Both the position numbers and the translations under genes were made by a program. From Chara braunii (Eukaryota > Plantae > Charophyceae), in contig BFEA01000037.1 in the NCBI GenBank assembly GCA_003427395.1, positions 3,943,196 to 4,007,195 on the forward strand: a stretch of DNA of 64,000 bases, in the 5' to 3' direction. Shown piece by piece: positions 19,889 to 20,410 of the stretch. The notes under the pieces were generated by a model. The model was not told the DNA's origin. It ran no database searches and worked only from the letters and a program-made list of their open reading frames with translations. The first letter of the stretch is position 1. Each line of letters begins with the position of its first letter.

Positions 19889-20410
19889 TCCTAGTCGACC
19901 GACGTTGCTCCACACCTAGGAGATCAACATCCTAGGAACGGATGACGTTCAGATTCACTTGGCGTTAACCAAACGTATCTATACTACAGCGAATGAGCAA
20001 ACACCCTCGACTGACCTACCTCTGCATTCGCATCTAAAAACTTTTGCACGTGGGTCAGTAGCTCGGTAGCGATACGCCCCTAAGGGTGGTGACAACCCCT
20101 TAAGGAAAGAAAGCTTATGACCCGTAGAAACCTATCATGTCGTAGGGGACCGCGGAATGTACAGCTGGCGCACCCGGCTAGAGCGGCGAAGGAGCGACGC
20201 GACCACGCCCGTCTCGGCAGCTCGCGGGATTAGTTAAGCATCGTTCCCGAGTTGTCTCTTGATGTTTGTTTTTGTTTTACTCCTGCGTGACATGGCCGGG
20301 AAGGTTGTCGCCTTTGTGAAAAAAGCGGGAGCCGATGCGCTTGACAGGTGGCGCCATTGTCGGGGACAACGACAAACTACTGTTGTCCCTAGCGGAACGA
20401 CACTCGGGTA
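19889..20410 (+). ncRNA. Putative conserved structured cis-RNA spanning U5-PBS-leader, copy B
   Basis: Shared blocks CCTAGTCGACC, CTACAGCGAA, GTAGCTCG, GATACGCCC, GGTGACA, TGTCGTA, GCTGGC, ACTCCT..GTGAC, and covarying helices versus A. Confidence 0.65.
20349..20366 (+). other. Primer-binding site, tRNA-Asp(GTC)
   Basis: TGGCGCCATTGTCGGGGA, 2 nt after CA; 16/18 to the Athila-type PBS. Confidence 0.85.

Follow-up and report, generated by a model that had tools for sequence, protein, structure and literature searches.

A structured, non-coding block next to the tRNA-Asp-type primer-binding site in two long-LTR retrotransposon families of Chara braunii

The last ~460 nt of the long terminal repeat (LTR) are the only part of the LTR which aligns between two families of retrotransposons, here called A-type and B-type, found in a 64-kb stretch of DNA (the window) from the roughly 2-Gb genome of Chara braunii (assembly GCA_003427395.1). 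This block, folded and non-coding over ~300-460 nt, lies where a leader RNA is expected to lie, at the 3' end of the LTR in B and in both LTRs of element A, with GG and an 18-nt tRNA-Asp-type primer-binding site (PBS) adjoining it in the 5' LTRs (A2 and B). On balance we favour the explanation that it is the conserved and folded 3' terminus of the LTR, most probably a transcribed R-U5 leader, which together with the PBS hairpin would act in cis in tRNA-Asp priming or packaging in a superfamily of tRNA-Asp-primed long-LTR retrotransposons of this species. The position of the block against the PBS makes cis-acting priming or packaging the natural reading, and we infer this function as well as transcription from a point upstream of the block; the label U5 is itself an assumption. 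The block is uncatalogued and unusually well conserved across families with otherwise unalignable LTRs. Structured leaders close to the PBS are already known, and since they are expected in LTR retroelements the block leaves current understanding standing.

Elements A and B and the extent of the common block

The coordinates of both elements and of the parts of the block are collected in Table 1. Element A carries two LTRs and a PBS but its 8-kb interior contains only ORFs without any Pfam retroelement domain, and it is therefore a non-autonomous, LARD-like LTR retrotransposon. A clean target-site duplication was not found for this element. Its 3' LTR has a terminal TGT which is missing from the 5' LTR (window 14817-14819), and the A-type LTR ends that have no PBS (window 367-371; L010:23455-23460, in a locus described below) are followed by the identical next five bases, ACGGT, in the minus-strand reading. 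The interval 19889-20410, singled out in the preliminary description, comprises the end of the B LTR, the PBS and the hairpin that follows it. Both families have in common the LTR terminus ...CTYGACA followed by GG and the 18-nt PBS, and the two PBSs (A2 and B) are at most two transitions away from TGGCGCCGTTGCCGGGGA, a sequence presumed to be complementary to the 3' terminus of plant tRNA-Asp(GUC). ARAGORN detected no tRNA-Asp gene in the ~420 kb of Chara DNA searched. Downstream, the PBS of B is separated by ~900 nt of AT-rich sequence without ORFs from an assembly gap (21262-21396, 135 N), beyond which the sequence may be non-contiguous with B; a second B LTR was not found within the 64-kb window.

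Table 1. Features of elements A and B in the window (MFE z-scores are against dinucleotide shuffles)
Feature	Position	Strand	Remarks
B LTR end	19889-20347	+	Terminates ...CTTGACA, then GG + 18-nt PBS
B-type module I, conserved structured block	19889-20190	+	Opens with invariant 12-mer TCCTAGTCGACC; ~67% to A1/A2; MFE z = -3.2
Hairpin CCUAGG/CCUAGG (A-type CUUGGG/CCCAAG)	19915-19936	+	Two pairs changed on both sides between families
10-bp helix 20010-20019 / 20050-20059 around UGC...GCA inner stem	20010-20059	+	10/10 paired in B, L10c, A2 and L10a (4/5 copies)
Constant apical loop GGTGACAA	20088-20095	+	Invariant in B, A1 and A2; contains GTGACA
Variable linker, longer in B-type, unalignable with A	20191-20269	+	Alignment gap/mismatch region
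B module II, final ~80 nt of LTR	20270-20347	+	Box GCGTGACA at 20285-20292; ~71% to A2 12317-12250
PBS of B, TGGCGCCATTGTCGGGGA	20349-20366	+	Fuzzy pattern search; 2 transitions off canonical tRNA-Asp complement
Hairpin overlapping and following PBS, GGGACAACG...CUGUUGUCCC, plus conserved tail	20364-20411	+	
Element A LTR pair	372-4027 / 12250-14816	-	~90% identity with indels; 3.65 and 2.57 kb
A-type module I, 5' LTR (A2)	12360-12672	-	MFE z = -1.76
A-type module II + GG + PBS TGGCGTCGTTGCCGAGGA	12230-12318	-	
A 5' LTR (A2): PBS TGGCGTCGTTGCCGAGGA, preceded by GG	12247-12230	-	Fuzzy pattern search
A-type module I, 3' LTR (A1)	482-793	-	91.5% identical to 5' LTR copy
A-type module II, 3' LTR end	372-440	-	No PBS after

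That B and both LTRs of A share blocks in the same order was borne out by blastn (word 7). Positions 19889-20187 of B align with A1 793-482 (66.7% identity, E 9e-28) and with A2 12672-12360 (66.8%), and positions 20279-20411 align with A2 12317-12185 (71%, E 3e-15), the latter match spanning the LTR end, the PBS and the hairpin 3' of the PBS. On its 5' side the similarity begins abruptly at the invariant TCCTAGTCGACC, from where it extends to the PBS, and over the modules as a whole the two types are only ~65% identical. No further similarity between A and B was found by the same search in 14817-20420. The remaining LTR, described earlier as ~5 kb that could not be aligned, is in this respect as stated, but the LTRs measure at least 2.75 kb in B and 3.65 and 2.57 kb in A. 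The block is considered non-coding since no ORF within it is conserved and the lengths of its indels are not multiples of three. Searches for gene models or ORF calls that overlap the module, made with the ORFs 11902-12348 (plus strand), 634-810 and 12513-12689 (minus strand), gave nothing or low-complexity noise.

A profile search of the window returned three copies of the block only (B, A1 and A2). A further ~357 kb of Chara DNA was fetched through homologues of the RNase H-integrase ORF of a gypsy element of the window, and among these sequences the block was present in a single 97-kb locus (L010), which contains two A-type copies (23921-23460 and 5320-5034, the latter interrupted by an N run) and one B-type copy (L10c, 35177-35660) with 78% identity to B. 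Searches of the window and of all loci with nhmmer and covariance models (CM) revealed no diverged copies besides these three of the window and three of L010. Pattern scans of metagenomes yielded nothing, or one chance match (L001) which was ruled out by the module profile. The same 97-kb locus also holds a degraded chromovirus (59235-64265, minus strand; RT, integrase, SH3_Tf2-1 and chromodomain) which adjoins none of its three module copies.

The comparison of B with the B-type copy of L010 shows that the two can be aligned from ~17600 through the LTR end, which places the length of the B LTR at no less than the 2.75 kb given above. In this comparison module I presents 74-82% identity, versus 86-89% for the upstream LTR blocks 18700-18799 and 19200-19399. 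Judged from these alignments the module is not the sole constrained part of the B-type LTRs, yet it appears to be the sole part common with the A-type. The upstream blocks could possibly be a promoter or an enhancer. Very high contig depth (13-54k) was observed for the B LTR blocks 18700-18799 and 19200-19487 (plus strand), and the segment 19303-19411 resembles 30665-30555 on the minus strand (69%).

Neither the window nor the fetched Chara loci yielded a gag-pol element with the block, nor the autonomous partner which element A had been suggested to parasitise by means of it. The gypsy pol located at 30.5-33.2 kb was considered as the coding part of B and was rejected, as it has 0.9-kb LTRs and no tRNA-Asp PBS. 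It belongs to a 5'-truncated Ty3/gypsy element (30500-34048, plus strand; RT-RNase H-integrase) with a 0.93-kb 3' LTR (33125-34048); this element is 85-89% identical to numerous C. braunii copies and has no relation to the tRNA-Asp elements. The gypsy families to which it belongs have LTRs of 0.56-1.27 kb, equally without a tRNA-Asp PBS, and the close protein relatives of the window gypsy ORF are all from C. braunii (GCA_003427395.1).

Elsewhere the window contains a complete 5.8S rRNA match (44232-44362, plus strand; RF00002, 69 bits, E 4.5e-15) amid repeat-rich sequence and, on the minus strand, a Helitron remnant at ~22300-29400 (Helitron_like_N at 26672-27181; PIF1 helicase with 2B domain at 24011-25264). 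A 780-aa ORF without Pfam domain (47623-49965, minus strand) lies in a stretch with 59% G+C and scattered single Ns (49480-49510). (CT)n/(GA)n microsatellites are found at 21660-21800, 40910-40954, 53570-53652, 57051-57129, 58712-58800, 60058-60136, 61969-62046 and 62806-62884, several of them within a repeated unit of ~300-800 nt (58.6-63.6 kb), and tandem repeats with periods of ~112 nt and ~72 nt occupy 39591-40037 and 42326-42544, respectively.

Conservation of the fold

The fold of the block is better than that of the controls and is kept between the two families. When B, A1 and A2 were folded jointly by RNAalifold the consensus energy was -87.1 against -68.4 +/- 4.8 in column shuffles, and with five sequences it was -81.6 against -55.7 +/- 4.9, i.e. 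z-scores of about -4 to -5. The independent MFE folds of B and A2 have 24 pairs in common, five of them with changes on both sides, compared with 2.0 +/- 3.1 pairs (maximum 14) in 200 shuffles. The sense strand of the element fits better than the antisense strand (energies of -87.1 and -78.0; 93/94 pairs formed in A2 versus 78/94), and the G-U pairs favour the sense strand as well. The L10c copy provides a further control, as the structure was built without it: its substitutions break three of the pairs of B, against 11.7 +/- 2.4 expected (P ~0.0003), and 14 of its 17 changed pairs are still paired. Three private mutations of B (19953, 19973 and 20027) break predicted pairs, and in each case the letter present in nearly all reads, which were inspected position by position for the majority letter, restores the pair.

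Covariation, strictly understood, is genuine but thin. Between B and A2 both-sided changes affect 16/94 pairs of the three-sequence model, against 6.8 +/- 2.0 (maximum 13), and in the five-sequence model 20 pairs covary against 11.7 +/- 2.9 (maximum 22); for the whole block this amounts to 16-20 of ~95 pairs where 7-12 are expected by chance. In a core of 149 nt and 42 pairs, for which six copies were aligned to the CM, 92.5% of the cells are paired versus 34-44% when the partners are slid. Half of these core pairs (21/42) are invariant and only 4/42 show change on both sides, a number equalled in 30/500 shuffles. The strict count of uninterrupted stems common to B and A2 (26, against 17.4 +/- 6.4 in column shuffles) showed no excess, and the decay in B together with indels probably lowered the power of this count. 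A1 and A2 served as a neutral control, where decay after insertion broke 6/9 changed pairs compared with 15/43 between the families, which is the expected direction with numbers too small for significance. The thin covariation and the few both-sided changes can be explained by the fact that only two lineages, A-type and B-type, were sampled. The block was originally described as a large covarying structured RNA; the structured part of this description stands and, as expected of a leader RNA, structure is conserved between diverged elements, but the covariation proper is modest: the majority of pairs are invariant, and both-sided changes go beyond the controls in a handful of cases only.

Four of the five helices put forward in the preliminary description hold in some form. 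The pairing of CTGACCTAC/GTGGGTCAG in B and CTGGTCCAC/GTGGACTGG in A is found as a 10-bp helix with two both-sided and four one-sided changes, and CCTAGG/CCTAGG against CTTGGG/CCCAAG is confirmed, with both-sided changes at two pairs. The helix CGTATC/GATACG, replaced in A by CGTACCCC/GGGGATACG, is likewise maintained, and a matched CCC/GGG insertion lengthens it in all four A-type copies. The proposed GACGTT/GACGTT stem (GACGAG/CTCGTT in A) is present in the three-sequence model, whereas one of the new A-type copies disrupts it (6/9 paired). The helix which fails is the stem around GGTGACAA, for which compensatory change had been claimed: its GGG/CCC core is constant, its flanks shift register, it has no both-sided changes and 79% of it is paired. 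The small hairpins YGAG/CTCG and CTGGC/GCYAG were also recovered. Three single-stranded stretches are strictly invariant, namely ACAGCGAA, GGTGACAA and UGUCGUA.

Taken as a model, the conserved fold is well supported in the 5' two-thirds of the block, which would contain the 19915/19931 hairpin, the 19973/20071 helix with the YGAG hairpin and the 20010/20050 helix with its inner stem. For the 3' third the topology is ambiguous: between the three- and the five-sequence models the prediction varies from a long-range helix to a long local hairpin. In the predicted fold a strand of module II at the LTR end pairs with the 5' half of the PBS, whose 3' end closes the conserved hairpin.

Transcription, abundance and alternative explanations

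RNA-seq data consisted of three oligo-dT runs with few reads in both orientations, and in these no transcription start, poly(A) site or step at the block edge was visible; in the richest run depth tracks the DNA copy number (Spearman 0.95). In both families TATA-like motifs precede the block by 60-90 nt. Another TATA-like motif, TATATGTAT, lies in the linker of A, downstream of module I, so that module I could be U3 and not R-U5. In the Logan contigs of a DNA run the summed word depth reaches 82-90k over 19983-20180, with 1-5k at 19488-19784 and 0.25-0.9k beyond 20478, and this peak implies that many more copies and families share the core at a likeness of 82% or more. Loose ends and junctions of the read contigs at 19905 and 20107-20129 represent other family variants of the variable segments.

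A different explanation, which we regard as unlikely but of some weight, is that the block is conserved as DNA, or is the slowest-drifting end of LTRs that descend from a common ancestor, and that its helices are a by-product of G+C-rich conserved sequence. The candidate roles would then be a U3 core or downstream promoter, transcription-factor sites or the needs of integrase and strand transfer. Such conservation would be in keeping with the invariance of half of the core pairs and the scarcity of both-sided change among them, with a strict stem count no better than in shuffles, with RNA-seq lacking any sign of a defined transcript, with TATA-like motifs both upstream of the block and inside the linker of A, and with other B-type LTR blocks that are conserved equally or better. 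Nevertheless it is hard to reconcile with a consensus energy 4-5 sd better than that of column shuffles, with the agreement of independent folds far above chance, with the avoidance of pair breaking by the substitutions of the held-out copy, with the matched insertion in every A-type copy and with the better fit of the sense strand.

The common block might also have arisen by exchange, if minus-strand strong-stop DNA (R-U5) made on one RNA is transferred to the 3' end of a second RNA packaged with it and so generates mosaic LTRs with R-U5 and U3 from different families. The sharp edge at TCCTAGTCGACC and the reach of the similarity to the PBS agree with the expected extent of strong-stop DNA, and the many junctions of read contigs at 19905 and 20107-20129 agree with families that swap variable segments. 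Nevertheless the A-type and B-type modules are too different (only ~65% identical) for a recent exchange, and exchange alone leaves unexplained why the differences preserve pairing. We therefore find this origin quite improbable as the explanation of the block; moreover it requires a functional R-U5 block in itself and would complement the leader explanation without replacing it. It is more improbable still that the block is a catalytic or free-standing RNA, either a ribozyme that processes the transcript by self-cleavage, like the hammerheads of retrozymes, or a captured cellular non-coding RNA gene. Its large size, its many helices and the invariant single-stranded ACAGCGAA, GGTGACAA and UGUCGUA could be expected of such an RNA, but there is no pile-up of read ends within the block and no Rfam family matches B or A2, even at E values up to 10.

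The Rfam searches in particular agree with the earlier statement that the block is not a named RNA family. No match reached the gathering score in the block, and cmscan at E up to 10 over B 19700-20500 and A2 12100-12800 returned only chance-level hits of 12-17 bits. The models of retroviral leaders (PBS, DIS and packaging) and of cellular RNAs in Rfam did not match B or A2. The ribozyme that had been suggested found no backing either, since none of the self-cleaving families (hammerhead, HDV-like, twister, pistol, hatchet and hairpin) was detected in either sequence in the same search.

Primer motifs and comparison with known systems

As an R-U5 leader the block would act in cis on the RNA of the element by presenting the PBS. 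The motif GTGACA occurs twice in the block, in the loop GGTGACAA (20088-20095) and in the box GCGTGACA (20285-20292), and is presumably the complement of the anticodon loop of tRNA-Asp(GUC), expected to be UGUCAC; of this complementarity, the GUC anticodon and the universal U33 by themselves account for GACA only. Since this 6-mer has a frequency of ~0.2 per kb per strand in Chara DNA, two conserved occurrences in 460 nt are unlikely to be due to chance. The two motifs would probably meet the anticodon loop of the primer and so place tRNA-Asp for the initiation of reverse transcription. The block may also hold a dimerisation or packaging signal read by the Gag and RT of the superfamily. All members, including non-coding derivatives such as A, would need the same trans-acting proteins and the same tRNA, and the fact that these must read all members could explain why the block stays alignable and keeps its helices as the rest of the LTR drifts.

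The GTGACA of the loop GGTGACAA is furthermore complementary to the invariant UGUCGU at 20138-20143. This allows a bolder proposal, suggested by motif complementarity, to which we give a small chance only: the block could be a new class of large structured RNA which senses its own primer, with the two GTGACA motifs reading the anticodon loop of tRNA-Asp and one of them otherwise engaged in an internal pseudoknot with UGUCGU. Binding of the tRNA would then switch the RNA between a translated or closed state and a priming or packaging state, and such an RNA might be common to all giant-LTR families of Chara and perhaps to other charophytes.

The contig depth of the core suggests that long-LTR elements with this block are very abundant in the genome. 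If the block is a defined cis-acting RNA, its covariance model offers a handle to annotate these elements and to tie non-coding derivatives to their helpers, and the block becomes a candidate Rfam family. It would also be a rare case beyond yeast, flies and retroviruses of a leader structure with extended contacts to the primer tRNA.

Among plant elements, priming by tRNA-Asp has been reported for non-chromovirus Ty3/gypsy elements, Athila included (PMC6317226). The Chara elements resemble these in their putative tRNA-Asp PBS and long LTRs; membership of this lineage is judged by RT/RNase H/integrase phylogeny, and no coding region linked to the block was found in the DNA covered here. Non-autonomous elements which have retained the cis-acting signals of their helper are represented by the plant LARD and TRIM types and by mouse VL30, which is packaged by MLV (PMC4859993). 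Element A is similar to them in that it combines two LTRs and a PBS with an absence of recognisable coding domains, and in having only the PBS-proximal block in common with another family; it differs in that no helper was found in the DNA covered here, B itself having no demonstrated gag-pol.

In its anatomy the block with its PBS domain appears to match the known PBS domains of Ty1/Ty3, Gypsy and HIV-1. Ty1, Ty3, Gypsy and HIV-1 are established cases of extended primer contacts and of similarly sized 5' packaging regions (PMC4974528, PMC1635307, PMC7793103). Besides the PBS, Ty1 and Ty3 have extra contacts with tRNAiMet, and in Ty1 there is a pseudoknot and a packaging region in the first ~580 nt (PMC4974528, PMC3592414, PMC5371799). 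The Chara block shares with these elements a folded region of several hundred nt around the PBS and segments beyond the 18-nt PBS which are complementary to the primer tRNA. Nevertheless there is no sequence relation, the Ty1 region is mostly in gag, 3' of the PBS, whereas the Chara block is in the LTR, 5' of it, and in Chara the primer is presumably tRNA-Asp and the predicted extra complementarity is to the anticodon loop and not to the T and D arms.

In the PBS domain of HIV-1 an A-rich loop contacts the anticodon of tRNALys3 (PMC7793103). The likeness to this and other retroviral leaders, which also serve dimerisation and packaging, consists of a U5 hairpin loop complementary to the anticodon loop of the primer, located upstream of the PBS in a leader of many helices. 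The differences are that GTGACA occurs twice in Chara, that its interaction is deduced from complementarity alone and that no Rfam retroviral leader matches the block. A further parallel is Drosophila Gypsy, an element of the Ty3/gypsy type to which the primer tRNA can bind at more than one place, its genome having two distinct binding sites for tRNALys,2 (PMC1635307). In Gypsy the second site, located at the genomic 3' end, binds the same 3' portion of the tRNA; in Chara the additional motifs match the anticodon loop and precede the PBS by 55 and 255 nt.
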